Assembly: GCA_043228905.1 (NCBI GenBank)
Contig: JBHGNT010000002.1
Coordinates: 4,712,001 to 4,776,000, forward strand
Source of the DNA: Azolla caroliniana
Taxonomy: Eukaryota > Plantae > Polypodiophyta
DNA: 64,000 bases
Direction: 5' to 3'
Shown one piece after another: positions 14,701 through 37,580 of this stretch (the first letter of the stretch is position 1; the number at the start of each line of letters is the position of its first letter). The notes under the pieces were generated by a model, which made no database searches, had not been told where the DNA came from, and was given only the letters and a program-made list of their open reading frames with translations. A program made the translations under genes and the position numbers.

Positions 14701-16718
14701 ACATTGCACATTGCACATTGCACATTGCACATTGCACATTGCACATTATACATTACACATTACATGTTACATATATGAAACAATTTCAAAACAGTTACAT
14801 TGAAGGTTTTAAACCTAAAGAAATGGAAAGATTATCAAAAAGATCGGAGAAGACAAATCAAATATAGATACAATGAGAAGTCTATTGGATATGGGTTGCG
14901 AGGTGAGAAAGCCTGAGGAGGGGGAGTGAAAGCTCAGGGAGATCAATAGCAAATTGATATCGAAAAGTTCTTCGTCATCCATATTTCTGAACATATTAGA
15001 AGCGCCATTTTTCTCTTCGGACTCTATCATAAACCTGTTTAATAGCTATCCAATCCATGTGGTCACTTAAAACAGATTTATAAGCTTGTCTGGGAAAGTG
15101 CCTTGCATAAAACCCTCCACTCAAGTGGAATCGGTGTTAATAAAACCCTTCATTCAAAATTTTTTTAGTGATGAAATACATGAGCCAGAAAGATGGATGA
15201 ATCCTAATAAGTTACCATTATCTATATTTTGGAGAGCCGTAATATACTCATGTCTCATTGGAGATGGTTACTTTTTTGATGTAAAAATCAATTTCAAAGG
15301 AGAGGTGGATGATGGACAAAAAAATAGAGGTTTAGGCTGAGGCTCCATAATTCTCAGGTTTCTGATTGAAAAACATTGCCAAAATGTTATGTTTTATGGT
15401 GTATTTATGGTATTTTAAAACTTAAATAAAATGCGTTGAAATAAAATCCAATTACTAACTTTAAGCATGAAAGTATCCCAAAGAAGAATAAAGTAAGGTT
15501 TTAACCTATATCCTTGCCATCTCCCAACAACACACATCGTGTTGGAAATGCAAACTCCAGGAAGGGATGTTTATCCTCCCATTTGGAATGTGTCTGAGTG
15601 GCAATGTGCGTGACATGTATCTTCCAAACTTTGATCTGTGACAATGTTTGATACTTCTATTTTAGGTTCATTTTTATGTTGATTCAAGAAGCTTAGTTAT
15701 TGATCACAATCATGTGAAAGAAACTCTTAATCAAAGCCAACGGCCACAATCATGCCGTCCTTGCAAGCTGAGGAATGCAAAACATAAATAATGGAATCCA
15801 CTTGATTATCCTAGTCTGTCAGAAGAGCAATAGGACTATTAGAATTTCCATGTAATGGGAGCTTGAATTATATACAATAAATATAAGATTAATTGGGTCT
15901 TTAAATAAAACTACTATTTGTCTATTTTCATTTGATCTCATGTTCTCTGGTGTTGAAATACTCCAGTCCTGATGATGAACTGAAATCAGTTCCAGGTTGA
16001 ATGGTCTATACTAGCTTTTTATTTGCCTAAAATGAAAACTAATGCCTACAGAATTATACCACGTGCTATATAATCATCAGGTATCGTCAGTGCCACATTT
16101 TTTTCAAGCTGGTGTTTTTCATCCTCCGGATATGATGTATTTGCGAGCAATTTGATGTGTGATACTATATGCGTTGTTGTCGAAGTGTCACAGAAATGGG
16201 CAGATTCATACACACTAAGAGAGTTTGTTTCTGTGGATTGGTGACATGGTTGAACAGAATGAAATAATCATTTGAAATAATTATCTGGTTCAGAAAACTT
16301 GTGATGCTGTTGGGGTGTTTGTGTGATGGTATACCCACAAATTCTAACTGGTTGTTGAGGTTGCTTCATCTATGTAGTTTATACTATGTAGTTCTTGTTT
16401 TCTCACCTTTGTATTTAATGTATGAACTTGAAATGTTTGAGCTATATTTCAAGAGTTTTCTGAGTTTTGAGTACAAAACAAGTGTGGAATTTAACTTGGA
16501 ATGTTTTCTCTTTATATTACCACTGTTGGGCATTCAAAACCCGAAACATGGGATTTGTTGAACTAATGTTTTTCATTTTCAATTTTCAGATGGCAGCAGT
16601 TGCAGCCCTTTGTGTGCAATATGAGGCGGAGTTCCGCCCAAACATGAGTATTGTTGTGAAGGCCTTACAACCTTTGCTGACACCTAAACCGACTCCACCG
16701 CCACCTGGCATCCCATAG
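11713..16718 (+). CDS. PTI1: Pti1-like receptor-like cytoplasmic Ser/Thr kinase (RLCK-VIII), 359 aa. Exons 11713-11791, 12077-12327, 12731-12857, 12969-13242, 13611-13743, 13828-13914, 16590-16718
   Basis: GT-AG introns; exons sum to 1080 nt in frame. Motifs [78 protein letters not shown]-terminus MGNCCS is a myristoylation/palmitoylation signal. Confidence 0.96.
14296..14765. repeat. (CA)n followed by heptamer satellite (CACATGA/CACATTA/GACATTA/CACATTG) in kinase intron 6
   Basis: Tandem 7-mers arranged in variant blocks. Confidence 0.97.
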
Positions 16719-16984
16719 AGAAGAAGACACTTCGAAATAAAAGAACTTGGTTGGCTGTAATGTTTGTGTGTGCATTTTGCATTTTTCTATTATGATGGAG
16801 ATGATCTCATTTGTTATGCTTTGAGAAATTTAGGAAGGAGATACTGAAAGTCGTCAGACTATCCTCTTCATTTGTTTAGCTTGTGGGCACGGTGTTTTTG
16901 CATTGACATTTATTTTTACTTCATGGACCGTGGGCTTGTAATATGTTTGAAAAACCACCTGATTTGGGCCGGAATTACATAATG

Positions 16985-17018
<34 letters not shown>

Positions 17019-18617
17019 CGTTGAACCAAATCATGTAACAATATCATGTTTTTTTATACACGATTCTTTGTTTAAAAGGGCTCCTTTTTGTTACAGAGGA
17101 TTGTTTTTTATATTTTTGATTTTGGAATCGCTTGTAGCTATTGAGTTTTTGGTGGATAAATGTTCCAAGTCCTTTTTTTGATTGCTTGAGGAAAATTCGT
17201 GGTGGGGAGTGTCTCAAATTGTGTCTTGAATTTAGAGGTTAGTAATGATGTTGGGTGTTTGCGAATGTTCTTTGAGGATTAAAATTCGAACAATTACAGT
17301 CGTATCTTTTCTTTTATTGTTTCTATGTTTTACTCGATTCAATCTTCTTTTGTTCATTGCAATATAGGAAAACTAAGTGTTTTAATGGAAATAATAGTAG
17401 AGTAGTAACTATCTTTTTTAATGAATGGGGCTATAGCTTCTTAATAAGGAGCAAAACCTCTGTCCTCCATTTATGTTTCTTTGTTACTCATGTCTATTTA
17501 CATCCTATGAGGCGTTAAATCATATGTTTGGATAAGAGAGTGAGAGAGAAAAATAGCAAGTACTCAGATGTTTGACTCCGCTTTTCCTTTGTTCACGCAT
17601 GGATGCATACATGAGATCACATAAGAACCAATAAGAAATGTGTAACTCGTGATGTTGATCTTCCAAAGAGAGTGCTTTCATTCTTGAGCCATGGGAACAT
17701 ATGCAAACTTCAGCCACACATAACAAAAGTCTTGTTTACCTATACTAGCAACTACCAAATCTCGTTCATTGTTGGCAACATTCCCTCCGGCATTTGTGAG
17801 TATTGTTGACAAATTCATTTTTTGGGGCAACAATAATGATGCTTAGCAATGAAGTTCCAAAATAGTCTCCATATTCTTAGAGATGCATGGATCTTTACTA
17901 GAGGTTTATATCACAAAGTTACTTGTTTCATTGCACGGTACCATCAACAAGCTGGGCAAAGCATTGATGGCATTTATAATAGAGAAAGCACAATAATTTA
18001 ACTATATTCTTTCAGGCATGGAAATGAAGTTAAAAGATGACGTTCATTCATATTTCTCAAACTAAAAACGCTAATGCAATGTGTTATAGGTGCACATGTG
18101 AGTCCAAAGTGATTAAATCCCATAAGAAATCGAAATTTTAGAGTGGTTGGGCTAGAACAATATTGGGGTATAACAAAGTGAAGCTTTACTAGCACTCATA
18201 AATTATAATAGAGAAAGCATTGCATTGTAATTGTACTCTTTAAATCACGGGCGCAAAGTTCGTAGAAGTCAAAAGTTGAGGTTCCTTCATTTGCCACAAA
18301 CTAAAAACTCTAATGCTGTGTGGTATAGTTGCGTGTAGGAGTGCAAAATCATTAAATCCCACAAGAAATCTAGTTTTTTAGAGTGTTTGGGTGAGAACAA
18401 TATTCAAATGTATGATGTCTTGAGAAGTCCTACGCCATGCCTTCCTATGTGAGCGAACATCCATAAATCCATGATGATGTTGCTACATAAATTTCTTGTA
18501 TCATATTTGTCAAGTGATTGTACAAGTGGCATGGTATGAAAATAATTTAGTCATATTCATGAAAACATGGTTGTCATGTCATTGCTCACACATTCAAACA
18601 TGCATATGTGCTTGACC

Positions 18618-18696: not shown

Positions 18697-21600
18697 GTAG
18701 AGCTACTACGGAGACCCCGGTCCGGATCGGGAACATCCAGGAGCCGGTGGTAGCACTGATAGACCACAGTTCCGAAATAAACCTGATGTCCATGGACTTC
18801 TACAAAAAGGGCAAATGGTTGATCAACACCAAGCACAGGTGGAAAATACGCGCGACCACGGGTGCTACGGAGGAACTACACGGGGCATGCTTGAACGTGC
18901 GCGTCGAAATTGGGGATGTCGAGATAGATCAACACTTTTTTGTGTAGGAGACTTCTTCGCACCTGGTGATACTCGGCGAACCATACAGTACGACGGCCCA
19001 CATGGAGACCAAGGTGCTGGACAATGGTTCAGCGTACGCACGCGTAAAGACCCAAGATGGACATCATTTCGTCTAGTTTTTGATGGTATGACCAAACCAC
19101 AAGTGAAATTGTGAGACTCTCGGTAGTGATGACCGAGGGGATTTTTAGAGAGGGCTATCCAAGCGTGAGGCCGTGATAGTCCGGACACCTCAGAGGAACC
19201 CCACACATGTACCATAGGTAGGAAATTTTGGTTCTCCGACAACGGAGGTTGTATGATAGCTGCCATCAGCTGTTGGGAAAGAAGAAGGGTCAAGGAGTGT
19301 CTCAGGGCGTGCGGAGCCCTCAACCCCGATGAAGAGATTAGCGGCGCTGTGGAGGTGGTCTCTTTCGACGGCACCCTGGAAGAGATAGGGAAGGCGTTCG
19401 ATGAAGGCCTCAGTGAAGACTAGGTGATTCCAGTTAATTTTGTGAAAATGTCCGAAGTCATTGCCGACTTCGGGGAGAAGGTCGGGTCGGGTCAGATGGC
19501 CTGCGTAGACATGAGGTACAAGACTGTGGACCGGAAGGTGAGGCCAGTGGTGGCTCCCTTGCCGGAGGGCAGTGAGGAACGGATGAAGGGGGTTGCATCG
19601 GACCCAAGTTTGCGGAATCCAACCGACATAGGGCACCGGTTCACCGATATAACTCTACGGGAGCTCAAGATCGGTGGGGGTGGCTTTCTATTGCCGATGG
19701 AGGAGGACCGGTTTCCGAGGATGCTTGGGAGGCACGGGAAGGCCTTCGCATTCTCGCCGGAGGAGATCGGGTAAGTGAACCCGATGATCGTGGAGTCAAT
19801 GGTTATCTTCACGATACCGCATGTGCCATGGAACCTCAAGCCGATTCCAGTACCCAGAGCTCACATCCCGAAGTTGATGGAGCTGCTGAAGGAGAAGGTG
19901 GAGATGGGCATCCTTGAACCGTCGAGTGCCTCGTATTCGAATTAGTGGTTTACAGTGCCGAAGAAGAACGACACGTTGCGCTTCATTCAGGACCTGCAGC
20001 CGGTCAATAAGGTGACTATTCGAAATGCAGGAATTGGGCCAACCATTGACGAATTCGCGGAGGCCTTCGCTAGAAGGTCGATCTATTCGGTTGGCGATCT
20101 GTACTTAGGATACGACTAATTCCAACTAGCCATAGAGAGCAGGGATATTATGACAATGCGGACTCCTCTTGGTTTAGTGCGGATGTGTACCCTGCCGCAA
20201 GGAGGAACCAACTCAGTGGCGCACATGGTGAACGCAATGAACAAGGTGCTAAGGGATTGCATCCTGGACATCACCATGCCATTCTTGGATGACATCCTGA
20301 TCAAGGGATGTCCGGTGGAAGATAAGGATGATTCAGTCGGGCCGAATGGATGCCGGAGGTTCGTGGCCGATAACATTGACGATTCCAAGAAGGTGCTACA
20401 AAGGCTCAAGAGTGCGCGACTCACCTTCTCCGGAGAGAAGTTGGCTTTGGGGCAGTCTGAAATCTTGGTGGTTGGGCACTTGTGCGGGCCTTACCGTCGG
20501 AGATCGTCTCCGGAGAAGGTGGAGGCCATCTTCGCAATGAAAGAGGAGTGCAATTCGGTAACGGAGGTCCAAAGGTTCCTGGGTGCGTGCACATTCTATC
20601 ACATCTGGATCCCGCATTACACACATGTCGCGGAACCGCTCTACCGGTTTCTGAAAAAGGTGCGTAAGTTCGAATGGAATGAGGAGCACGCAAAGTCGGT
20701 CCGGAGGTTGAAGGAGGCACTAGCCGAGGCATGGGCCCTCCGGAAAGTGGTTTATGGGAAGGGTGTCTTGGTTTTTGTGACCGTGGACACGAGTTCGACC
20801 AAGATCAGATGGGTGGTCAATCAGGAGGACGAGAACGGCACAAGGTTCCCCATCCGGTTCGGGGCGAAGGTACTGAGTGAGTGATAGCGAGGATACGCCC
20901 AGGTTAAGCGCGAACTCTAGGGTATTGTTTCAGCAGTCAAGGCCGACAAAGACTATCTGATCGGAACGGAGGTAGTAATCGAGACGGACTGCCTACCTAT
21001 CCTAGGTATGGTTTTCGGATGTGCGACTCCGGACTTGGCCATGCTCAGGTGGATTGCATACATTAAGTCCCTGAATCCGGAGATATGGCACATCTCCGGG
21101 AAGGACAACACCGTGGCCGACATGCTTTCAAGAGTGCGGTTTGACAACGAGGACGGCATGGTGTCCGAAGACGAAGAAGTCGACGTAGACTTCTTCGAGT
21201 CGGCTCACATAGTGGCAAGGGGGTGGGGCGCTCCAGCACTTAACAAATTTAACGAGGACGACTATGACGGGGAGTGGCTCCAGATCGGCAGGTTCTTGAG
21301 GACGTTAGTGCCAGACACGGCATGGACGAAGGGCGAGGCGAGCAAGATTCGGAAGAAGCCGTACCGGTTCTTCTTGCGGAATGGAAGTATATGGAAGCAT
21401 CTGAAGAAGCAGAACGACATTCCACTCCACGTAGTGATAAGAAGAGAGGAACAGAAGGCGCTGTTATCGACGTATCACGAGAGCCCTTGGGGCGGACATT
21501 GCGGAATGTGGACCACATTCAAGAAGTTGAAAGAGAGGTATTGGTGGCCGGGGATGTATTGGGATGCACATCAGTTCGTAATGACTTGCGAGAGTTGTCG

Positions 21601-23402
21601 GATGCATTCGGTGATCCGACACAGAGACGAGTTGCACCCGACCTACCCACTGACTGTCCATTTCAAATGGATGGTGGATTTAGTGATGATGCTGATGGGG
21701 ATAGGGCAGATGCGGTACCTGGTGCTTACGTGAGAAGACCTGACGAACCAAGTGGAGGCCGTGCGCTACAGAACAAGACGATTGCGGCCGTGTGTCGGTT
21801 CCTGATTGAAGAGGTGGTCTGCCGGTATGGGTGCGTGGGGAAGATCGTGGTTGACGGGGGAGAACTAGATGCGTAAGAGGCCGAAGAGCTGTTTGGCCGG
21901 TTAGGGGTGAAACTCTCCCTCACGAAGACGTACAATCCGAAAGCGAACGGAAAGATAGAGCGCGAACACGGGCCAATCGTAAAAGCATTGGTACGAGCAT
22001 GCGAAGGGCAAGTCGGGAATTGGCCATGGATCCTACCTTACGCGTTATGGGCAGACCGAACTTTGCATAGTTCGGTGATCGGATTCATATCGGCGGAGCT
22101 GATGTACGGGCAGAAGCCGATCATGCCGATGGAACAGACTGTTTCCTCATGGGGAGCAATCGACTGGAGAGACGAGATGAGCCGAGAAGAGCTGTTGGCA
22201 GCACAGATTCGACAGCTCGAGTGGAGGCTGGAGGATGTAGATAAGACGAAGGTGAAGTTGCACGCGGCAAGGATGAAGAACAAAGACCGGTTCGACCGGA
22301 TGCACCGGCTACGACCAAAGAAGATCGAGGAAGGCGACTAGGTATTGGTTTATGACAGCAGCCTCAACAATTAGCACAAGACAACGCGTAAATTCACCAG
22401 AAGGTGGTTCGGGCCCTACGTCGTAACGAGCTCAAACAACAACGACACCTACCATCTCGTGGAGCTCAACGGAACACGGATAACAATATCGGTGGCGGGA
22501 AAGAGGATCAAAGCGTTCAAGAAGCGGCATGCGGATGAACCGGACTAGGGGAGCACGGATGATGGCGGCGACTTGACTGGAACGGACGACGAATCGGAGA
22601 GTGACGGTTGAGAACGGGCCGATTTTTCCCTAGAATCTGTCTCTTTCAGCGAATACCGGTGGATGCGCGGTTTGGTGGGGGTGGATGTCGTGAAGAAAAC
22701 CGACCATAGGAGGAAATGGGGATTCGAGCGCGTGAACCATGACATGCGTGAATGCGCGCAAATTTTAAACAACTTTGTACATAGTCTAAGAATAGGTCGG
22801 CGTGATGTAAACAAATTAAATATAAACATATTAATAGGTTAGGAAATCAAAGCATATCTCTGTCCGAAGGGACAGAGAATAATGATGATGTAACTAGGAT
22901 GGGACGACTCTTACTCGTCGGCTTATAAAAGGGCGAGAGAAAGGACCAAATGATATTGCGTTTTGGGAGGAGAAGAGAGTGTTGTCGGACTGGGAACTGA
23001 GCGCTAGTTCCATCTCTCTGTAGGGTTTCTCTAGGCTGGTCGCCTCTGTCCGCGCAGGAAGCTTGCGTGCTCCCGATAGAGGCTCCACTTTGTATTTTGG
23101 TTTGTGTGTGCGGGAGTTGTTTGGGGTAGTTGCCGGCGAGCCGGTTGTAATGTTCTTGATCAGTTGTAACCTTCTTTAATCTATTGTAATCTATTGTAAT
23201 TGGTGAAGGGTCCCTTTTTCCCATCTATCCTTTTGCATGTCACCGTGTCCTTGTTTGATAGGGACAAGCCCTGTGCTGGCCGGTACCCTGCACTTGCCGC
23301 CTCACTCTTCCTTTCTCTTTTCCTCTACCTTTGCACACTCCTCAGTTCAGGCCCCCCGTGGTCCCGCTTTAGTTTTCGACGCGCATGCGTGATAACATGA
23401 TA
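18697..23402 (+). mobile_element. 5'-truncated Ty3/gypsy (family A): PR-RT-RH-INT, PPT and 3' LTR (22686 to about 23402)
   Basis: ALIDHSSEINLM (PR), RMCTLPQGGTNS...FLDDILIKG (RT), VTVDTS (RH), YWWPGMY/FKWMVDL (INT). PPT GGTTTGGTGGGGGTGGA, then TGTCGTGAAG. Confidence 0.93.
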
Positions 23403-25858
23403 GTGTGTTGACACCTTATCCCCGATTCGGTTTTGGATGTAGATGGCCGTCTGGACCGCCTTGAACTAGTAGAACTTGGGCATGCTCTTCTCTTCTAGCA
23501 TTGCCCGTACCACCTCCATAATCGACCGATTCTTCCTTTCGGCCACACCGTTTTGTTCCGGTGTGTATTTGCAGCTAAATTCTCTCCGAATTCCTTTTTG
23601 CTATAGATAATTGTTGAATTGGCTGGAAAAGTATTCTTTTCCGCCATCCGACCACAGGCACTTGATCCTCCTCTCCGTTTCCCATTTGACAAGACTTTGC
23701 ATGTGTGTCTATTGTAGTCCTCGATGAAGGAGACGAAATATCAGCTCCCGCCAAGACTAACGTTCTGTGCCGGTCCCCATATATCTGAATGTATCAAGTC
23801 GAGCTTGTTACTACTCCGGTTTCTTTTGGTGGGGAACAGAAGCCAATGTTGCTTCCTGAGTTGGCAGGCTTCCCAAATTCGTGTCTTCCGGCCACTGAAT
23901 TTTGGCAATTTGAAAACAACCTGTTTCGATTGCAAGTCTTGAAGCCTCTAATAGTTGACGTGGCCAATCCGCTTGTGCCACAAGTCGATATTCGACTTGA
24001 CTTTCTTTCCTTTTACGAACAAGGTTGTGCCTACGTTGTTAGTGTTGAGGATGAACATCCTCCTGTCTGGCGCCCTTGCGTGATGATCTGGCCTTCATCC
24101 TCAATGAAGCACCTGAGGTGCATAAACTGCACTTGCATCCCATGGTCGACGATCTGTCCGACCGAAACCAGGTTCTTTGTAATTGTCGGAACATGTAAAA
24201 CGTTCATCAATTTTCCCTTTTGTTCGAACGACTTAAAGGGACTTCTCTGACATGCACTATCGGGTGAGGAGTGTTGTCTCCGGTTTCGACAACTCCCGGT
24301 TGTTCCTGCTTTTCTAGAAACGAGAACCACTCTTGGTGGCTCGTCATGTGGTTACAGACTCCGGAGTCAACGTACCACAATTCCTCCGATCCAGAAGTGG
24401 ACTTCTTCATTGAGTTTGCCTTGTGCTTCATCACGAAGACTAGCCCTTTTCCGGTCTTACCGATTCCAGATCCATCGGATCGTTCGTCGTAGTGCAAGCT
24501 TTATCGGTTCCCTTGTCTGACCTTACCGGATCCGGATTTATCCGAATCGGCGCGCTTCTTCTAGAACTCGCTCTCTCGATGGCCCTTCTTGCCACAATAC
24601 CAACATTTCATTTCGTTCTTTGGTTGCCAGTTTCCAGTGCATCTTTGACTCCCTTTGCTTGTGGAGGGTCCGGAACTACTGTCAACACTGTCTCTGTGCC
24701 TTTGGTTCTGCTCTTGTCAGCCGCCTGCATTGTGTGCCGACCCACCTCATCCGCCACACCTACGGGGCCAATCCGCCTATGTGTGTAGAATTCGACTATC
24801 TGATTGAGTGGCCCTTGACCCACTCACATGGTTTTCTTCGACCAAGAGCATTGATTGTAGGTCAAAGAAGGACGATGGCTTCTCCCGGGTGCAAATTGCC
24901 GTCCGGATTGGTCCTTTGGTGACTTTGCATCACTGATGTAGCCAAGCATCTAGTCGTGCACACAGGACGCGAGGCAATACAACACCTTGCTCGCTCCTTG
25001 CTGCCATACTGGGAAGTCCTTGTGTGCCGAATCCGGCGCTGCTTCATTTGCTCCTTCTACGTAGCTCTAGTATCCATGCCCTTACATGTAGTAGTACATT
25101 TTATACGACTAGGAAGCATAGTTGCTCCGATCAAGCTTTTCTAATGGAAGCGAGCTCGCCATGCTTCTGTCCATATCTTCCTTCCTGTTCTTTATCGGTT
25201 GTTAGGGTTTGTCTATGAGCATCACTCATCGATAACAGAGGATTCTCAACCCTCGCGCTCTATTACCATGTAAAAGTTATTATGTGGAAGCTTAGGTAAA
25301 TCGGCCCAGCCGGATAACAACAGTAAAATAGAAATGAAAGTTTAATGGAAGCTTAAAAATACATAGTACACGGGAGAGACAGAGAGAGTAGAATAACATA
25401 ACTCAATTAAAAAATAGTAACACTCTGTACATATAAATGTCCTACAGAACACTTTTTATACAATTCCTTAAAAGGATTGCGGTGAAAGCATGAGAGTGGA
25501 AACAATTAGCTATGTCCTTGACATAGCTAATTAGCTATGCAAAAAGTTACCATTGATAAATAGTCATTTTAGCAAAAAGCCATCATTAATTAATTAACTA
25601 TGCAAAAAACTACCATTGAAAATACTAGAATGTTTTAATTACATATGTAAATGAGCACCATAAATGTGCAACATAAACGTGCAACATAAACGTGCAACAT
25701 AAATTGATATGTGCACCATAAATGTGTACCATAAATTATATATCGAATTCCTAGGTCCATTATGCATGATCCTTTGCTACATCACGTAGGCCATCTCTAG
25801 TTGAGTATTGTGGGTTAGTTGCTACCACTGTTGCTAAACCCTATCGAGTCCACCTGCC

Positions 25859-26280
25859 GCCACTCTACACTCAAGGGCCGCTATTGTGCATTCCAAGCAT
25901 CATCGATAACTGTTCAATCTGACGGGGTTCTCTTCTTTGTGCCACTCTACACTCAGGGGCCGCTATTGTGCATTCCAAGCGTCATCGGTAACTGTTCAAT
26001 CTGATGGGGTTCTCTTCTCTGTGCCACTCTACACTCAGGGGCCGCTACTGTGCGTTCCAAGCATCATCGGTAACTGTTCAATCTGACGGGGTTCTCTCCT
26101 TCATTGCCATCATTCTACACTCAGTTGCCGCTACTGTCTAGTCTTGGATTGCTTCCACATTTCGATTTGACGGAGTTCACTCATCCAACGGCAACAATCT
26201 ACACTAAGTTGTCGCCATTGGTCGGTCCTGGATCGCCTCCTCAACTATTCGATCCAACGGAGTGAACTCCTCTACTGTTC
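25859..26280. repeat. 82-bp tandem repeat (3 good copies plus degenerate ones) upstream of the transposase
   Basis: Units start at 25859, 25941 and 26023. Confidence 0.9.
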
Positions 26281-26430
26281 GGTCTTGGATTTCAATAACT
26301 TTTCTGTCTATTGATTATCTTGTGTATTGTTGTGTCTAATCTTGTGTATTGTGGAATATTTTTGTGTATTGTTGTTGCCCATAGCCATCTTAAATACTTG
26401 TTTTTTTTTCTGGAAATTTAGGGTTTTAAT

Positions 26431-28382
26431 ATGTCCAGCCAAATGGAAGGGGAAGAAGGGTGTTTAGAATTACCCCTCAATAATCATAAGGATAGGGATG
26501 ATGCTATCAGGACACAACAAGCCATACGAAATTATTGGGCAGAAAAAAAAGGAAACATCGTCAATTGTTGAAGGATACGAAAGCCACACTCAGTAAAGGT
26601 AAGGATAGTTTAGCTGAGAATGTAAGTAATGCGACTACCATCATAGAGAGAAAGGTTGTAGACTATTTCAATGTTCAAACCAAGCACATCAGCAATGAAG
26701 AAAAGAAGGTAGTACTTTATGGAATATTAAATGATCCATCGATAAAGGTCATAGTTGATTGTGATGGTCTTAATGCAAACATATAATCTATTTTAGTAAA
26801 TAATCTTCGTAATAGTTTCGTATCCATGAGCAGGTTAGAAGATGATCTTGTCTTAAAAAGGTCTAGTCTAATGATGTTACTTAATAGTGATGTTGACGAT
26901 ATAAACATCAGTCAGCTATCTAAGGTAATTGGTGTTAGTAGAAAAATAGTGTACAATACAATGAACTGTATAATTTCCTCGGGTGAAGGAACTAGTCTAC
27001 TAAAGCTAACTACAAGATGTAAGCCAATGACACCCATAACATTTGAAATCAAGGATGTAATCACAATGTTTTGGACTAATGAGAGTAGGGTTTCACCCAA
27101 TAAAAAGGATTTATGCAGGAAATGTGTTGGAAGAAATCAATACGAGGAGCATCCCATTCATCTTCTTGATGTACCTCAGGTATTTACATTTATCTCAACA
27201 TTTGTTTTGACTCTACACGAAATAGGTAATTAGAATAGGTAATTAGCTAATTAGCTATTAGAATAGGTAATTAGCTACCATGATAGCTAATTAGCTACTA
27301 TGATAGTTAGCTACTCTAGTTATTACCAGCTAATTAGCTACTAAGAAAGCTAATTAGCTACTAGAATAGCTAATTAGCTACTAGGACAACTAATTAGCTA
27401 CTAGGAAAGCTAATTAGCTACTAGAATAGCTAATTAGCTACTAGGACAACTAATTAGCTACTAGGATAGTTAGCTAGTTACGAGAATAACTAATTCCCCT
27501 TTATTACGCAAGTCGATTTATTTATTAGGTTCAAACGAATGCATCCAAATATCAAAGTTCAACTACGAACATTCGAGTCTCTTAAGCCACACTTTGTGAG
27601 ACGCTTAAAGGATCGATACACATGTTGTTGCATCACATGTAGTTGAATTTTTAAGAACAAATATGTCAACGAGTGCAACATGTGTTTATTCCTCGCAAGT
27701 CCGAGATATCAAACGTGAATTTTGGGAAGTGAAGATAGATGAAGTAAATAGGGAGAAGACCTGGGAGTGCCAAGGAATTCCCGAATTGTGATCTCTGCAT
27801 GCTGTTCGCGGTTATTCTAGGTTGGATGGTCATTGTATTGCGGTTAGAGAATTGACTTGTTTTTGCTTCCATTGTGTGCAGGGAAATTGGAGATATTGTC
27901 TAAACAAAGCATACATTCAGAATTGGGAGTATCACACTCTGAATGATAAGGAAGCAGTTGATGGAGAAACAAGGCAGAATGCTGACTTCATATATGAGGG
28001 ACTTGGAGATACTTTGAGTGATGTCCTGAACGTTGGGGATAACTTCGCTGTAAATGTTGAAGAAGGCAATTCAGAGGGTGCTGATTTCTATATATTGAAG
28101 TGCACGGTTAGTAAACAGTGTGCAAGGCAGAATATTGTAGATGCATGGGGAAATTTTGTATCTGCCGGGACATTCTACATCGAAGGCATTTTTTATGCAA
28201 AACTAGATGACTACGAATATGTGTACAGGCTGTTAGAAGACAAACCAACGGCGTACATGTACTCTCATTTGGTCAGGTGCATCAATGTCCCAATGTCAGA
28301 ATACAATAGCTGCTTAGGTTTATACACTGTTGGTGCTAATGTGTATGAATGTATTTACAAAAGTATGCCATGGAATTTGTAG
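26431..28382 (+). pseudogene. Sola2-like transposase pseudogene lacking its catalytic core; one intron, 27180-27511
   Basis: FWTNESRVSPNKKD; FKRMHPNIKVQLRTFESLKPHFV...RYTCCC; SLHAV...RELTCFCFHC. Frameshift near 26545, stops, and acceptor mutated CAG>CAA. Confidence 0.72.
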
Positions 28383-29008
28383 CTACAAGTAGCAATTACC
28401 ATGTTCTCTTGTAAAACAAACATGTATTTCGCGAAAACAATTAAATAAATTCGTTTGAGAATCAATTTCTTGTATATAGTTTGCTTTCTGTTCTTCTTTC
28501 TCAATAAAATCATGTCTTTTTTGTTAAGTTTTAAGTTATAAGTTATAGCGAAATAGTCATCAATAGCTAATTAGCTGTACAAATGCAGCTAATTAGCTCA
28601 ATAGCTAAATAGTCATCAATAGCTAATTAGTTGTATTCAAGTTTACTCAGGTTTACCAGAATAGCTAATTAGCTACCATGATAGCTAATTAGCTACTCCA
28701 ATATTGCAATCAACCAGTAGCTAATTAGCTGTCAATAGAACCATGTACAACAGTATGCCATGGAACTTGTAGCTGCAAGTAGCAATTACCATCTTTTCGT
28801 GTTAAACAAACATGTATTTCGAAAATACAGTTAAATAAAGCACTAGCATGAAATCAACAATCTGCAACATATTCCTCAAATTACACAATAGATAAGTACA
28901 GTGGGAACAAGTAATTAAATTCTTCATTGAATAATGTCATCTCTTTACATATTTATAAATTACCATTGGAAATGTCTACAAATCTCCTATAAACAGCTAA
29001 GCTCTTGC

Positions 29009-29646
29009 TAGTCAGTGGAACGAGTATACATATATTATCCGCATATCGAGCTCGGTATGGAGTCCACAACCATGCACCTAGTTGGCAGCTCACTGTTGGG
29101 AGACAAGTCCCTCCGGATGGGAAGGGAGAAGTACAGTGCCGACGAACAAACTCGGCCGAGGCCGAATCCGGAAGAGGAGTACCTGGCTACGGAGAGCCGG
29201 ATGGCGCAGACCCGGTATGAACCGGATGAGGAGTACCCGGCTACGGAGAGCCGGATGATACAGGCCCGGTGAGAACCGGAAGAGTACTCGGCTCCGGAGA
29301 GCCGGATGGCGCAGACCCGGTATGAACTGGATGAGGAGTACCCGGCTACGGAGAGCCGGATGATACAGGCCCGGTGAGAACCGGAAGAGGAGTACCCGGC
29401 TACGGAGAGCCGGATGATACAGGCCCGGTGAGAACCGGATGAGGAGCACCCGACTACGGAGAGCCGGATGACGCAGACCCGGTGAGAACCGGAGGAAGAG
29501 ACATATTCGTAAATATGTTTCTGAGAGCCCATCGAGGCTATATTTGTAAATAGCCGAAAAGTCATATTAGTATAAATATGACTTAGGGCAAACTTTTAGT
29601 CGTGGTTGTCATTTTCTGTTTTGCACGAGATTGGTGTGCGTAACTG

Positions 29647-29685
<39 letters not shown>

Positions 29686-29965
29686 GTCGCTGCCTCTATT
29701 GTAACCGCCGCCTGTGGCGAAGATTAGTGAGCACGAGGTCGGTGCCTCAGTGAACTCACTGTTGTATATTCCTACATAGTGACAGTTTGTAGCCTGTGGG
29801 CTGCCGTGGTTTTTCCCCTAGTTTGGGGTTTTCCACGTAAACCTCCTGCGTATTCTCTCCTTCTTTGTGTCGCGTTTTTTTATTTCCCGTTTTCTGTGTA
29901 TCATTCTAAGCTCGGTTGTGGCCGAGCGTTGCGCATAAGGAACGTTGGGTTCCCGTCACTCACTG
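29009..29965 (+). mobile_element. Solo LTR (copia-like U5) inserted in the last exon of the cargo gene
   Basis: TSD CTTGC/TTTGC. About six 54-bp U3 repeats (29164-29500), TATAAATA, (GA)n, CGTGGTTTTTCCC...GGGTTTTCCACGTAAA. The host reading frame rejoins on removal. Confidence 0.8.
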
Positions 29966-31597
29966 TTTGCACCAGGTATTGTTCAGGCATTTCCTCAGGT
30001 AGAATGAGACAACATCTCCGAATATTGAAGTAGTGCCGGAAATGTTCTGTATCCAAAATCAATGTGTTGTCGACATTATATTAAGGACAAGTAGCCCAAA
30101 AATCAGAAAGTCTCTTGAATCTTGCAACTTCCATTTGCTCACAATTTTCTCGTGCCCATTGACCTTTAAAATGACTTCGCCATTTTAGGAAGAATCTCGC
30201 TAAACACTTCCACACATCTGATTTTGGTTTTTCACTCGAAATAAACAAATCAAAGTATTGCACAACCCACTCTAGAAACTGATTTGCGTCCCTCCTTGGC
30301 TGCATATATCTCACACTCATCAAGACTTTATCAAGCTCCAAGATCAAGGCTCTTCTTTCGACTTCTAGTGGTTTAGGTTTCCATTCCTGAAACTGAGCTG
30401 ATGTTACACCATTTTCTGGTAGGACACGATCAATCTCAATCAGCTCAGGTTCGACCGACACAACTGGCGTCCTTTTCCTCTTCAAACCCCTAGTCGACTG
30501 TGTTGGGCCTGGCTTCACATTCTGGTGCTCTTGTTTTGTCGACTTAGTTATCAATCCTTGGATTACCTCGGTGCATGTAGCTATTGATCTGCTCGATATC
30601 AGTCCACTGGTATCACATGCTGCATCTACCTGCAACATCAAGTCATCCGTGAAACATGCTTGATCAACTTGTGTGACCAGATCACTTGTGTCAGTTGCTA
30701 CATCTACTTTCAAGATGGGGCCCTTTAAACATGCCGCAACATCAACAATATCCACACTGCCATCGACCTTACGAGCAATAGAATCAAACCCTTTAGACTC
30801 TGCAACATCAGAAAACACCAACATATTCACACTCACAAAGTAACTAACAGTCTCACAAAACAACATCCTGAACATCAAAGAGTTTCAATCATAGAACAAC
30901 ACTCTTCAAATTATCTTGGAAAAACATCATAGAGTTCCATTACATAATGTGGATCAAGCAACAACCAATTTGAGGTTTTACTTGTCCAACAGGATAATAA
31001 AACTTCATAAAACCCTAGCAAAATCCCTAAGCTAACAATCATATCCAACTAAACAATATTTCACTCCACTACATCTGGGCCCCTTGACTGAGTAATTGGT
31101 CTTGTTCCCGATCGTGGCCCCTTTTTCAGCCTTTTTCTGGTCGGTTGCCCATTTAGCCTTGCTTCTTTCACCCAATGCGCAAGTGTGTCCTCCTCCGACA
31201 ACCTTCCCATCACCTCAGCAGCTAATTGCACATCGACCGTTTCTTGCGCTAGCTTTTCAAGTATAGAGGGATCTGTTTGGACATTTTCAGTAGTTGGGCT
31301 CGGTGGGGTGGAATCAAGGTCTTGAGATTCGAAGAAATGTTGCATCAAGTGTTCATAAACACTGTTGTTGTGAACCTCAGTTTTACATGTTGTTTCCACT
31401 ATTTCATGGCATTTCACATCGTTGCCTAATTCAGTACACTGTTCCAAAAGAATAGGGTGGAGCTGATCTAAAGGAGATGTGATAGCAGGACTCTTACTTT
31501 CAGCCACGTTGGCAGCAATATCCTCATCTGTTGCAGCGTCATCAGCACCAGACACATAATGTGCCGTCCTTAATCCACAAGATTCTACAATAACATG

Positions 31598-32715
31598 ATA
31601 GCTATTTAGGATAGCTAATTAGCTACTTTACTAAACTATGGTAGTAGCTAGGATAGCTAATTAGCTAGTACGATAGCTAATTAGCTAGTACGATAGCTAA
31701 TTAGCTAGTACAATAGCTAATTAGCTACTTTACTCAACTATGGTAGTAGCTAGGATAGCTAATTAGCTACTATGATAGCTAATTAGCTACTTTCAACAAC
31801 TATGGTAGTAGCTAGATAGCTAATTAGCTACTAGGATAGCTACCAGTAGCTAATTAGCTAGCAGGATAGCTAATTAGCTAGTAGGATAGCTAATTAGCTA
31901 CTTTACTCAACTATGGTAGTAGCTAGGATAGCTAATTAGCTACTATGGTAGCTAATTAGCTACTTTACTCAACTATGGTAGTAGCTAGGATAACTAATTA
32001 GCTACTAGGATAGCTAATTAGCTACTTTACACAACTATGGCAGTAGCTAATTAGCTAGTAGGATAGCTAATTAGCTACAATGATAGCTAATTAGCTACTT
32101 TCTCAACTATTTAGTAGCTAGGATAACTTATTAGCTACTAGGATAGCTAATTAGCTACTTTACACAACTATGGCAGCAACTAATTAGCTACTAGGATAGC
32201 TAATTAGCTACTAGGATAGCTAATTAGCTACTAGGATAGCAACTAATTAGTTTCCAGTAGCTAATTAACTAGTAGGATAGCTAATTAGCTTTTATACACA
32301 ACTATGGTACTGGCTAATTAGCTATGAGTAGCTAATTAGCTAGTACCATAGCTAATTAGCTACTAGGATAGCTAATTAGCTAGTAGCTCATTAGCTGCAA
32401 GTAGCTAATTAGCTACTTTACACAACTATGGTATTAGCTAATTAGCTTGAGTAGCTAATTAGCTAGTAGCTAACTAGCTGCCAGTAGCTAATTAGTTGCT
32501 AGTAGGATAGCTAATTAGCTAGTAGCTAACTAGCTGCCACTTAGCTAATTAACTACTGTAGTAAACTATGGCAATAGCTAATTAGCTAATAGGATAGCCA
32601 TTAGCTGCTTTAATCAACTATGGTAGTAACTAATTAGCTACAACGATAGCAGCAAAATAGTTTCCATACCTTTTACGGCTTAGCTAATTAGAAAAGACTA
32701 AGCTTATTAGCTACA
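31598..32715. repeat. Array of the 14-bp palindrome TAGCTAATTAGCTA, intronic. Smaller arrays at about 25505-25600, 27225-27495, 28555-28730 and 35100-35152
   Basis: Dozens of copies seen directly, seen only inside the TIR element. Confidence 0.95.
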
Positions 32716-34084
32716 ATATGGTATACCTGTTAGTTTTCTCCACTCATTTGGTAGAGTTGTACTGCAATCTCCCAAACAGAATGCAGCAATTCGACAGGCA
32801 TGTTGAAAACAAAGCAGATGGTATGTGTGGTTGCATGGTTGTAGGTGAACCAACAAAGACGCAGTTTTGTCCTCCACACCTAACCTGCAAGCGATGCAAC
32901 GTGCTTGAACTGTCAATAAATCATTTTCTGGTTCTCCTTCATTTGGTAAGGGAGCAAGAATGTTCAGGTCCAAATCCTCTCTGCTCCTTACCATTCCCTC
33001 CACAAAATGTAGCTGCTTCTTAAGGCAGCTAACTACTTGTTCTTGATGAATGTATTGTTCCTTCAACGCAACGGAGAAATTTACCGATTAATTATTCCTG
33101 TCTGAGAAAGATACACCAACTTTGCTCAGGAATCATTAACTTAAAGCTTTTCCAAATTGTAATCTGCAACAGTATTTACACCTAGAAGGTCCAGGTTCAT
33201 TGAAAGAACCTGGATCTCTGTTTGCAGTTGTATTTTACGCTGGGGATCTAGTGGCCCCTCTAATTCAAGCTCCTGTTGCGCAACCTATTCCAGATAATGC
33301 TTGATTAGCACATTTTACCCTTAATGTTATTTATAACACAATCACATACCAACAAAACAATAGTTACCTGAATCTTATTTCTAATCGTTGTAACAGCGGA
33401 AGTAACTTTGCTCTCCATTGCAGAAGCCATTGTGGCTTTCTCTAAATCAGTCTTAAAAAATGCCAATGTCTCACAAGCTTCATGGACATTTTTTACCATA
33501 TAGCTAACCAATGTCTCACCTGTATCATCGACATTGGCTTTCCTTGGGTGTCGGTGTGGTGTATGCCCCTGGTTTTGATGGGAGTCGGCAGTTGCATCAA
33601 CAGCTGCCGTGCTCCAAAATCTGTCTATTTTTTGGGCCAAGGTCCCCATCTTTCGGCATCTTTTTACAGATGCCTCACCATAGACTGCCTAAGCTACCCT
33701 ATACATTTCAGGGTCTCTGGATTCCTTCGCTGTTTTGTAGTACTCATATGCAAATGCTCTAGCAAATGAAACTAACAACTCATTGTTGACTGGGTTCTCT
33801 TGATGAACTTTCTGGTGCAGCCTCATGCAGTCATCGTACAAGTCGGCTCGTACATGCTTCAACTTGACCTTGCCTTTGACTCTAGGCACTGTATATACTG
33901 TCATCCAGTCTACATCACTGATCAATTTATCACTTAGGACAGCAGGGTCAACACCCTCGAGTGACAGACCATAGGTGTTGTGGAAGTCCTCCTTTGTGTT
34001 GCAAAATTTTGCGAAGTTTAGCACTCTCGGATACGGAGGAACGAGCCATCTGAAATATCATTTCAGAAATAAGAAATAGTGCAA

Positions 34085-34630
34085 AATCAGAATATGTCAA
34101 AATCAGAAACCCCAATCAACAATAACAGAAATAGTGCAAAATCATTAACTTAGCAAATCAGAAACCCTAATCATAATTTGTATTCAAATATTTTAAATCA
34201 GAAACCCTAATCAAAATCTGTAATCAAAAGTTTGAAATAAGAAACCCTAATCAAAATCTGTAATCAGAAGTTTGTAACCAGAAACCCTATTCAGAAATTC
34301 TAATTAGAAATTTATAATCAAAAACCCTAATCAGAAATTTCAATAAGAAACCCTAATAAGAAATTTCAATCACAAACCTTAATCAGAAATTCTAATCAGA
34401 AATTTATAAACAAAAACCCTATCCAAAAATTCTAATAAGAAATTCTAATAAGAAATTCTAATTTGTAATCAAAATTTGTAACCAGAAACCCTATTCAGAA
34501 ATTCTAATAAGAAATTTATAATCAAAAACCCTAATCAGAAATTTCAATCACAAACCCTAATCAGAAATTCTAATAAGAAATTTATAAACAAAAACCCTAA
34601 TCAGAAATTTCAATCAGAAACCCCAATCAT
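34085..34630. repeat. Telobox-rich tandem array (CAGAAACCCTAAT) in the first coding intron of the cargo gene
   Basis: Repeated AAACCCTAAT interleaved with AGAAATTCTAAT variants. Confidence 0.9.
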
Positions 34631-37580
34631 CACTAAAGACAGGATTAAACACAAAAAAAGCAATATAAACACACCTGCTGCTACTCCTCGATCTGCGAGA
34701 CATCCTTGTATGGGACTCCAAGGACTTCGCCCTATTCGATTTTGGGGAAATATGAATTGGCACCAAAGTTCAGACAGTAGTAAAAAAGAAAAAACAAATG
34801 TTTGGGGTTTCTGTAACTGAAACATACCTGGACGATGATCGAGTGGGTTCTGTGTTGTAGCTCTAAATCTGCAATGTCGATTTTCTGCTGCTGCGGGAGC
34901 TACGTCTGCGTTCGTGCTCTGAGTACTCCATCTGTGTTCAAAATCAAACTTAGGCTAAACAGGAAATTGATGACATTGAACTCGACCTTAGATGATGGTG
35001 CTATTCCCCAAGTTCCACTACGTCTGAAACAGAAGTTCAAATATTTGAGTTTTTTCATTAATTAGTTTTTCAAATATTTGATTTTCCCACAAAAAAGACT
35101 AGCTAAAGAAATAGCTAATTAGCTATGGCCATTTTAGTAGCTAATTAGCTATAATAGTGTTTCCACTCGCATGCTTTTACCCCATTGACAGAAGTAATGA
35201 CAAGTACTTCAATGCTCATACGAGCGACTGCCACTAACTTCGAGGAATATGCCTATGTACTAGGCTCGGACTGTAGGCTTCTCCTGGGTGCAAATTGCCA
35301 TCTGGATTGGTCCTTTGGTGACTTTGCATCTCTGATGTAGCCATGCATCTAGTCGTGCACACAGGACGCGAGGCAGTACAACACCCTGCTCGCTCCTTGT
35401 TGGCATATCGGGAAGTCCTTGTGTGCTGAATCCGACGCTGCTTCATTTGCTCCTTCCACGTAGCTCAAGTATCCATGCCCCAACATGTAGTAGTGCATTT
35501 TATACGACCAAGACACATAGTTGCTTCGGTCAAGCTTTTCTAATGGAAGTGAGCTCGCCATGCTTCTGTTCATATCTTCCTTCCTGTTCTTTATCGAGTG
35601 TTAGGGTTTGTATGTGAGTGTCACTCGTCGACAACAGAGGACTCTCAACCCTCGCGCTCTATTACCATGTAAAAGTTATTATGCGGAAGCTTAGGTAAAT
35701 CGGCCTAGCCGGATTACAACAGTAAAATAGAAATGAAGGTTTAATGGAAGCTTAAAAATACATAGTACATGGGAGAGACAGAGAGAGCAGAATAGCATAA
35801 ACTCAATTAAAAAATATTAACACTGTGTACATATAAATGTCCTACAGAACACTTTTTATACAATTCCTTAGAAGTACTGACAAAAGTATTGACAAGTACT
35901 TCAATGCTCATACGAGCGACTGACACCAGCTTCAAGGAGTATGCCTATGTACTAGGCTTAGACCGTAGGCTTCTCCCAGGTGCAAATTGCCATCCAGATT
36001 GGTCCTTTGGTGACTTTGCATCTGTGATGTAGCCAAGCATCTAGTCATGCACATAGGACGCGAGGCAGTACAACACCCTGCTCGCTCCTTGCTGCCATAC
36101 CGAGAAGTCCTTGTGTGCTGAGTCTGGCACTGCATCATTTGCTCCTTCTACGTAGCTCCAGTATCCATGCCCCAACATGTAGTAGTGCATTTTATACGAC
36201 AAGGACCCATAGTTACTCCCATCGAGCTTTTCTAATGGAAGCGAGCTCACCATGTTTCTGTTCATATCTTCCTTCCTGTTCTTTACTGGGTGTTAGGGTT
36301 TGTCTGTGAGCGTCACTTGTCGACAACAGAGGATTCTCAACCCTTGTGCTCTATTACCATGTAAAAGTTATTATGCGGAAGCCTAGGTAAAATTGGCCCA
36401 GCCGGATAACAACAATAAAACAGAAATGAAGGTTTAATGGAAGCTTAAAATTACATAGTACACGGGAGAGACAGAGAGAGCAGAATAGCATAAACTCAAT
36501 TAAAAAATAGTAACACTCTATACATATAAATGTCCTACAAAACACTTTTGATACAATTCCTTAAAAGGACTAACAGAAGTACTGATAAGTACTTCAATGC
36601 TCATACGAGTGACTGACACTAACTTCAAGGAATATGCCTATGTACTAGGCTCGGACCGTAGGCTCCAATGGCCCATTGGTTATCACTATTCCGGAGTATG
36701 ATCCGGCTCTAGGTTCTGGATACCGATATATCCGGACACCTATCCGGTTCTCCGTCCCGGATACCGATCCAGCTCTGGCTTATTCAGCCGATCCGGATCC
36801 GGTTGAGCTTTCCCGCTCAACAAAGGGCTACTTTGCTTATGTATCCAAATAATTGAGGTTATCTCCGCTATGAACCTAGATTATAAGTCTAATCTATAGT
36901 TACAATTGTTCCCTTACAAGTATGTCTGCATTCGGCTGAGTTAGCAAAGGTATAGTTGGAACCTAATCTAATTCAACTAGTCATCTGGATCATAGGTTAT
37001 CCCGATCGGCCAGACTGGGTCGGTTGGATCAGCTTGCGTCTGAGTTAGCTCGATCGTACATATCAACTCATGTCCGATTCCGACTCTCGGTCTCTAGTAG
37101 ATCGTTTGCCGTAAGTATGCACTTGTTTCTATGCTCCACGCTGGATCCTCGATCTGTTTTCAGGTTCGTTCATCCCTCGATTGTCTCCTCTCCAGTCGGT
37201 ATGCTCGCCTAGAGTTGCGAAGAAAGGATCCTCGACATCAAGGGGGAGCTCTCATTAAGACAGGAGCTTGGAATAGCAAAAAGGGAATTCCACGATTCCA
37301 TCGTGGACCCAGTGAATAGGAAGTGGCTTTTAATGGAGCCGGAGCCAGAGAAGCCGGTCGAAGTGAAGGCGGCCCACATCAAAGAGGTAGCAATGGAAGA
37401 AGAGTTTCCGGGTAACTACTATACACGGCCACATTGGGCAAGAGCTATGATGAAGACCCTGGTACGGATGAGGGACGTTAAAGAGCCGGTGGTGGCATTA
37501 ATCGACCATTGATCAGAGATTAACCTAATGTCCATGGACTTCTATAAGAAGGGTAAGTGGCTAATTAATACCAAGCACGG

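Follow-up and report, generated by a model that had tools for sequence, protein, structure and literature searches.

An accessory gene in a DNA transposon of Azolla caroliniana, with a probable RING-like finger and an NIF-type fold carrying Glu at the nucleophile site

The DNA considered here, which we call the window, is a stretch of 64,000 nucleotides from Azolla caroliniana (GenBank assembly GCA_043228905.1, contig JBHGNT010000002.1, positions 4,712,001 to 4,776,000 of the forward strand). Within it lies one copy of an abundant two-gene, cut-and-paste DNA transposon of non-flowering plants, and the part that concerns us is the six-exon gene on its minus strand, at 34703-28953. We consider it rather probable that this stretch is the inactivated accessory (second) gene of the transposon, and that its protein, kept under selection, joined a RING-like zinc finger to an NIF fold in which Glu occupies the nucleophile site. 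As modelled from the sequence, the protein would have about 878 residues and would run from an N-terminal domain through a helical segment and the RING-like finger to an acidic linker with repeats and a KRKR patch, ending in a C-terminal NIF/FCP1-type HAD domain. The window copy is dead, and its worth is that of a well-delimited example of the family.

The transposon and selection on its second gene

The original prediction had described the gene as transposon-borne, and this is now established by the ends of the element, the duplicated target, two empty sites and a high copy number. The terminal inverted repeats (TIRs) are about 23-26 nt long and imperfect, reading GGTGAAAGCATGAGAGTGGAAAC on the left and, on the opposite strand, TGGGGTAAAAGCATGCGAGTGGAAAC on the right. 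A 4-bp target duplication surrounds the element, TTGC at 25477-25480 and TTGA at 35185-35188. The flanks, 24877-25476 and 35186-35874, are adjoining parts of one unit of a tandem repeat of about 692 bp, and two nearby units that are unbroken (35840-35910 and 36535-36605) represent empty sites, with CTAA and CTGA at the target. In the DNA runs X1 and X2, tens of thousands of contig pieces map onto the accessory gene, and one homologous contig has a coverage of 195x. The element holds two genes directed inward from its ends, gene 1 on the plus strand and the accessory gene, convergent with it, on the minus strand. Short TIRs and a 4-bp target duplication, the length that is characteristic of Sola elements, make it resemble the Sola2-type DNA transposons; in this copy gene 1 has no Pfam match and looks internally deleted.

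The damage to the accessory gene is of two kinds, stop codons and an insertion, and both had been noticed from the sequence at the start. Two in-frame stops interrupt the coding sequence. The TAG of exon 2 is W in the relative L006, where the exon is a single open frame of 239 residues (P0070), and the TAA of exon 6 is D in P0011. A solo long terminal repeat (LTR) also breaks a Ser codon of the last exon. This LTR is missing in L001 and L004, as well as in the X1 and X2 contigs, in which 870 bases are skipped.

Purifying selection acts on the accessory gene. When the window is compared with L001, the ratio of nonsynonymous to synonymous substitution rates (dN/dS) is 0.105 for the NIF core (p 2e-7) and 0.23 for the linker (p 2e-4); in the comparison of the window with L012, the first half of exon 2 gives 0.09 (p 7e-11). 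Synonymous sites of the RING exon are saturated in the comparison with L012, for which we give the raw ratio of the two kinds of difference (pN/pS 0.59, p 0.003). The open frames of the NIF part in Ceratopteris, compared pairwise, give 0.36-0.48 (p 0.004-0.04). In all of these values, the effect of selection while lineages were active is mixed with that of neutral decay once a copy had inserted, and the constraint is therefore understated.

Since plant DNA transposons often take up host sequence, the gene might be thought a set of captured host gene fragments (transduplication), carried in the element without a function. We regard this as extremely improbable. Every exon that is well sampled has a dN/dS far below 1, and between the same two copies, the window and L006, the exons are 89-96% identical, whereas the whole aligned stretch, introns included, is only about 79% identical. 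Moreover, at three of the four Ceratopteris loci (L002, L003 and L010) the NIF exon and a homologue of the C-terminal domain of gene 1 are placed tail to tail, the same arrangement as in the window and in L001, with 35-45% amino-acid identity in the NIF part of the fern loci. This arrangement argues that the NIF module is an old, selected part of the transposon family and was not recently captured. The selection and linkage results therefore already contradict the capture of fragments, including the neutral, single-copy capture that the original prediction had named as a possible objection.

Exons and domains of the predicted protein

The six exons (Table 1) total 2634 nt (3 x 878), or 878 codons, when exons 5 and 6 are joined at 31073/30797. 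Searches were run exon by exon, and the splice phases were checked by arithmetic. GT and AG are kept in L001, L005 and L006 at every junction that these copies cover. The splice proposed earlier from MSRRSRSSSR to WLVPP corresponds to the junction of exons 1 and 2 at 34675/34049 and is in phase; the coiled coil and acidic linker proposed with it are also present, the former as a helical, coiled-coil-like segment in exon 3. Intron 2 is absent from a divergent relative, P0078 on L012, whose reading frame continues from exon 2 into exon 3 without a break. By tblastn, residues 1-238 of P0078 fall at 34045-33368 and residues 240-274 at 33281-33177, and the intron is therefore borne out by a natural relative. 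Two coordinates had to be corrected. The junction 31065/30799, first proposed between exons 5 and 6, is out of frame (GA+A, GTC, TAA), and L001 has GC in place of its GT. The in-frame alternative is 31073/30797, with a GT..AG pair conserved against L001, and the intron so defined has indels relative to L001, whereas its flanking exons have none. The gene was also said to end at 28960; its true end is the stop codon at 28955-28953.

The C-terminal domain had been recognised as an NIF/FCP1/UBLCP1-type HAD domain from its letters alone, and Pfam matches in intact relatives, Foldseek and VIA-align all concur. The broken exon of the window scores 17.4 bits against Pfam NIF (PF03031; E 0.0037), below the gathering score of 21.8, and the family call rests instead on intact relatives, P0011 with 32.2 bits and P0045 of Ceratopteris with 29.9 bits. 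P0011, one of the 47 relatives returned by an exhaustive protein search, is an undamaged open frame that shares 93% identity with the exon in the window and runs on across both lesions; the last part of exon 6 continues its residues 299-347 and is kept in the Ceratopteris proteins. The proteins of Ceratopteris richardii, including P0045, are 35-37% identical and carry the UniProt label 'FCP1 homology domain-containing'. The predicted structure of P0011 residues 135-347 (mean pLDDT 50, pTM 0.52) has as its top Foldseek matches UBLCP1 (3shq, E 2.4e-4), TIM50, CTDNEP1, SCP1-3 and FCP1, and the top 50 VIA-align matches are all HAD folds (Z 6.2-7.8). The sole PDB sequence match is also UBLCP1, a weak one (E 1) in which IWS is aligned with IWS and YNADNTLILD with YNSSNTIMFD. 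Taken together, the structure matches led by UBLCP1 and this sequence match indicate an NIF-type HAD fold nearest to UBLCP1. Other searches of PDB sequences brought spurious matches only, to an interferon with the NIF alignment profile and to amidohydrolases with phmmer and P0045. Nothing was found with the NIF exon in a plasmid collection, an ill-suited place for it, and a metagenome scan with P0011 gave one truncated locus only.

The nucleophile of HAD phosphatases is an Asp, which becomes the phospho-aspartyl intermediate, and Glu cannot replace it. The window has ELDKV in place of DxDxT, and DT in place of the distal DD, as originally described. Thirteen of 14 family sequences, from several subfamilies and Ceratopteris, have Glu at the nucleophile position: motif I is ELDKV in the window and close relatives, ELDIL in the 48%-identical subfamily L008, EVEVF in Ceratopteris, and EVDKV and EVDTV in two further fragments. 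The second acidic position of the motif stays D or E, which gives the general form E-[LV]-[DE]-x-[VLF]. The family also appears to keep the Ser of motif II, the Lys of FK(R/K)L (motif III) and, of the acidic pair of motif IV, the first Asp; the other member of this pair is replaced by Thr or Ser. The window copy reads FISS where relatives read FIWS.

The domain thus has both a likeness to the known phosphatases of PF03031 and clear departures from them. With UBLCP1 and the small CTD phosphatases it shares the HAD-type fold, and IWS (motif II) and YNxxNTLxxD (motif IV) can be aligned. It differs in having Glu for the nucleophile Asp of DxDxT, Val, Leu or Phe for the Thr, and Thr or Ser for the second Asp of motif IV. 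No N-terminal ubiquitin-like domain, as in UBLCP1, was seen in the accessory protein, and its gene is carried by a transposon and not by the host. A further comparison is TIM50, an NIF-fold protein with a non-catalytic role, chains of which are among the top Foldseek matches. The accessory domain is alike in its fold and in being probably non-catalytic; it shares the fold only, with no further sequence relationship, and neither mitochondrial targeting nor a membrane segment was seen.

The zinc finger in exon 4 is probably RING-like. The first six (C-x2-C-x17-C-x-H-x2-H-x2-C, 32898-32809) are canonical, and the first pair, CIAC, has a hydrophobic residue inside, as in the RING-H2 E3 ligases of the zf-RING_2 and zf-rbx1 type, whose models the finger weakly matches. 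The six-ligand string is kept in nine close relatives (alignment A1) and also in L012, at 44% identity. Three later Cys of exon 4 are kept in A1 and in L012 as well, in L012 with the residues between them changed; some decayed copies are without them. In a look-alike search of the Atlas with a language model, the ten nearest named clusters were all of the RING clan (0.89-0.93), a result that, according to the tool, could arise by chance.

Of the remaining parts, exon 2 codes for a well conserved domain without a match in Pfam, and the Atlas look-alikes of the N-terminal domain, a mixture of SWIM and RteC leads, were set aside as too low in confidence. Exon 6 begins with four tandem 13-residue repeats rich in Asp and Cys, VD-x-A-C-x-T-x-D-L-x-x-Q (about 30755-30585), which are kept across copies and subfamilies (P0011, P0013-P0023, P0055). 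They are followed by a basic patch, KRKR (30482-30471), conserved across copies. The repeats have hydrophobic cores with acidic flanks (ILKVD, LVTQVD, MLQVD), and by eye only they are similar to SUMO-interaction motifs, such as occur in tandem beside the RING of SUMO-targeted ubiquitin ligases.

Contrary evidence and possible functions

It is worth setting out together the observations that weigh against the reading given above. They concern the finger, the state of the phosphatase fold, and the joining of the two in one protein.

The finger was first called a RING-H2, and this holds for six canonical ligands conserved down to 44% identity. It does not hold for the last pair, which is not the C-x2-C of the RING-H2 ligases: in its place stands C-x4-C-x5-C-x3-C. 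A CVWC in another frame at the start of exon 5, considered as the missing pair, is not conserved in L006. The Pfam RING models PF13639 and PF12678 match 7-8 of 10 members, the best at 12-14 bits against thresholds of 27-31, with E-values of 0.045-0.26 on the window's own exon and 0.01-0.26 across members. A profile search of PDB sequences with the RING alignment found no significant RING; the matches considered were a spurious one to carbonic anhydrase and a weak one to the Deltex RING (E 0.42). The AlphaFold model of the RING exon is all-helical with a pLDDT of 50, and is uninformative.

These properties of the finger, non-canonical and below every Pfam threshold, are also what one would expect if the accessory protein were a transposition cofactor with no ubiquitin-ligase activity, one that binds the transposase or the repeat arrays, or aids nuclear import, and uses the finger and the dead phosphatase as interaction scaffolds. 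The conserved linkage to gene 1 and the conserved basic KRKR patch fit such a cofactor, and a non-catalytic partner is commonly needed by two-gene DNA transposons. TnpA is treated in PMC13547354. The Cys/His set, however, is kept at 44% identity and its nearest Atlas clusters are all RINGs, and the Pfam searches recognised no DNA-binding domain in any exon. We see the cofactor as a real possibility, well short of an even chance.

For the NIF part, the predicted structure has a mean pLDDT of only 50, and VIA-align Z values of 7-8 are in the range that the tool calls common. There is also an exception to the Glu of motif I. P0050, a 48-residue fragment from an ENA metagenome, has DLDKV, a motif I of the canonical HAD form; here a decayed copy may have reverted, or the fragment may come from a lineage that kept the Asp and is perhaps still catalytic. 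The original prediction had asked whether intact copies keep DxDxT, and apart from this fragment the Glu is the rule, so that the pseudo-enzyme reading withstands this check with one exception. P0050 has to be considered together with the retained Ser of motif II, Lys of motif III, Asp of motif IV and second acid (D or E) of motif I, since all of them would suit an active, atypical phosphatase that acts on a substrate such as Pol II CTD, the proteasome or the transposase through Glu or a neighbouring acid, with a true Asp in some lineages. Against this stand the Glu in 13 of the 14 sequences, spread over several subfamilies and the fern, and the established chemistry of the HAD nucleophile, an Asp that forms the phospho-aspartyl intermediate. 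An active enzyme of this kind is very unlikely in our view.

The joining of the finger and the NIF domain in one messenger RNA is, as yet, a model that is consistent in phase. No RNA support for the accessory gene was found: none of the runs for this stretch is recorded as RNA, and of two runs guessed to be RNA, one covers only the solo LTR and the other nothing. In Ceratopteris the annotated gene models are NIF-only, and neither the RING-like string nor a homologue of exon 2 was found within 10 kb upstream of the NIF exon at the four loci by profile, phmmer or pattern searches; the loci are cut up by retrotransposons. The pairing of RING and NIF is therefore supported in the window's lineage only, and there as a gene model.

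The RING exons and the NIF last exon could accordingly be two separate genes, or alternative transcripts, with no fusion. The junctions are without RNA evidence, Ceratopteris has the NIF with the RING undetected in both models and loci, and the exon 5/6 junction first proposed was out of frame. We nevertheless judge two products unlikely. The corrected junction is in frame and keeps its GT..AG in L001, all of the parts lie on the same strand between the element end and gene 1 with a total length divisible by three, and the linker between them is itself constrained. Another relative, P0055, holds a coiled coil, a CxxC and the Asp/Cys repeats within a single open frame.

What a single accessory protein might do can be sketched as follows. 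In the reading that we favour, it would be needed for the spread of the transposon itself. The catalytically impaired phosphatase fold would be a binding module for a partner protein, perhaps a phosphorylated one, from either the host or the element, and the finger, if it is a working RING, would recruit a ubiquitin-conjugating enzyme to this partner. Since UBLCP1 is a phosphatase of the proteasome, both modules may be taken to point to the world of the ubiquitin-proteasome system and phospho-signalling, which is suggestive only. We put forward this mechanism, binding of a partner by the impaired phosphatase with ubiquitination if the finger works, tentatively and as one possibility among several. 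A bolder version would make the protein a transposon-encoded, substrate-targeting ubiquitin ligase, whose dead UBLCP1-type fold recognises a host protein in its phosphorylated state (such as the Pol II CTD, a subunit of the proteasome or a silencing factor), whose acidic repeats maybe bind SUMO, and which remodels host control in the manner of viral E3 ligases; this we find quite doubtful. The roles first proposed for the gene, an E3 ligase coupled to a phospho-reader, anti-silencing and host manipulation, are likewise hypothetical.

There are few accessory proteins of DNA transposons that are understood, VANC and TnpA among them, which control silencing or transposase targeting. Such second-gene factors of plant DNA transposons counter silencing or assist the transposase (PMC5735166; PMC13547354). 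The accessory gene described here is like those of VANDAL (VANC) and En/Spm (TnpA) in being a second, lineage-specific gene under selection beside a transposase gene; its protein has no sequence or domain similarity to theirs. An atlas of Arabidopsis transposon products has neither 'RING' nor 'phosphatase' in its text (PMC13547354). Literature searches on Sola2 in plants and ferns, and on RING or CTD phosphatase in transposons, returned nothing relevant, and no paper was found on RING or NIF genes of DNA transposons, Sola2 elements included. The interest of the family is that selection has maintained its protein in plant lineages distant from one another, and that it would pair two modules of ubiquitin and phospho-signalling in a way that is unreported for a transposon in the literature found. 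If the protein does bind and mark a host factor, this would be a transposon-host interaction of a new kind, and nature would offer a case of a phosphatase fold that has become a reader.

Gene 1, feature coordinates and surroundings

Gene 1 of this copy is a remnant of a putative transposase, with only about 500 codons of open-frame pieces, none of which matched a Pfam family. Barely 60 codons separate its CCC-x2-C motif (27539-27646) from its C-terminal domain. The catalytic core appears to be deleted, and this copy of the element could not have moved by its own gene 1. The coordinates of the features are collected in Table 1.

Table 1. Features of the transposon copy and its two genes, in window positions
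Feature	Positions	Strand	Remarks
Whole transposon copy	25481-35184		9.7 kb; left TIR 25481-25503; right TIR 35159-35184
Gene 1, putative transposase remnant	26431-28382	+	convergent with accessory gene; C-terminal domain 27822-28382
Exon 1	34675-34703	-	ATG at 34703; MSRRSRSSS, then AG; ATG and donor GT kept in L006
Exon 2	33368-34049	-	N-terminal domain; in-frame TAG at 33691-33689
Exon 3	33180-33284	-	helical, coiled-coil-like (VAQQELELEGPLDPQRKIQLQTEIQVLSMNLDLLG); GT/AG kept in L005 and L006
Exon 4	32727-33060	-	helix and RING-like zinc finger (probable); Cys/His ligands 32898-32764
Intron 4	31585-32726	-	full of arrays of palindrome TAGCTAATTAGCTA
Exon 5	31073-31584	-	acidic linker; acceptor TTGTAG/AATCT (slash marks the boundary) kept in L006; donor GAT/GTAGTG is GAC/GTAGAG in L001
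Exon 6, first part	29964-30797	-	Asp/Cys repeats, KRKR patch, NIF-like domain with FLEWVVQYFDLFISS; in-frame TAA at 30083-30081
Solo LTR in exon 6	29094-29958		865 bp; TG..CA ends; 5-bp duplication CTCAC at 29089-29093 and 29959-29963
Exon 6, last part	28953-29093	-	C-terminal helices of NIF-like domain; stop codon 28955-28953
C-terminal exon motifs, ALILELDKVL to FISS	30350-30234	-	ALILELDKVL 30350-30324 (ELDKV 30338-30324); FISS 30245-30234
C-terminal exon motifs, FKRL to LILDTE	30119-30045	-	FKRL 30119-30108 (in FKRLSDFW); NTLILDTE/LILDTE 30062-30045

Two short motifs recur in the element. The palindrome TAGCTAATTAGCTA forms arrays in intron 4 of the accessory gene (31598-32715) and in an intron of gene 1 (27231-27500), and it also occurs just inside both ends of the element (25505-25540 and 35120-35155), a placement that is as expected for transposase binding sites. 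The telomere-type motif TTAGGGTTT (telobox) is present in eight sense copies in intron 1 of the accessory gene (34162-34600), and one more, at 26418-26426, stops 4 nt short of the gene 1 ATG. Chance alone would give 0.6 copies in the window, where 18 are present, and the motif may be a common expression or chromatin signal of both genes.

Within the solo LTR a 54-bp unit is repeated in tandem six times, and there is a run of (AG)18. This LTR is far commoner than the transposon in the DNA runs, and it is the sole part of the stretch that was matched by a run guessed to be RNA.

The window as a whole is plant-like and rich in transposons, and fragments of copia and gypsy reverse transcriptase, integrase and gag flank the element on both sides. 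The units of the 692-bp repeat (24877-25476 and 35186-36664) bear a copia gag-like open frame (MNRSMASSLPLEKLDRSNY...), and the repeat looks like a retrotransposon fragment that was amplified as a satellite.

Some neighbours of the related copies may also be mentioned. Near the Ceratopteris copy on L002 there are minus-strand open frames with a ParB-like look (16099-17777; …YYVIGGSHSAEARR) and no Pfam match, and a separate DDE-type open frame on the plus strand (20185-21709) that matches Pfam DUF7869 with an E-value of 6e-49. On L004, a truncated 3' end of the accessory gene (1760-2014) lies beside an open frame that, by eye, resembles a Bet v 1/major latex protein host gene.

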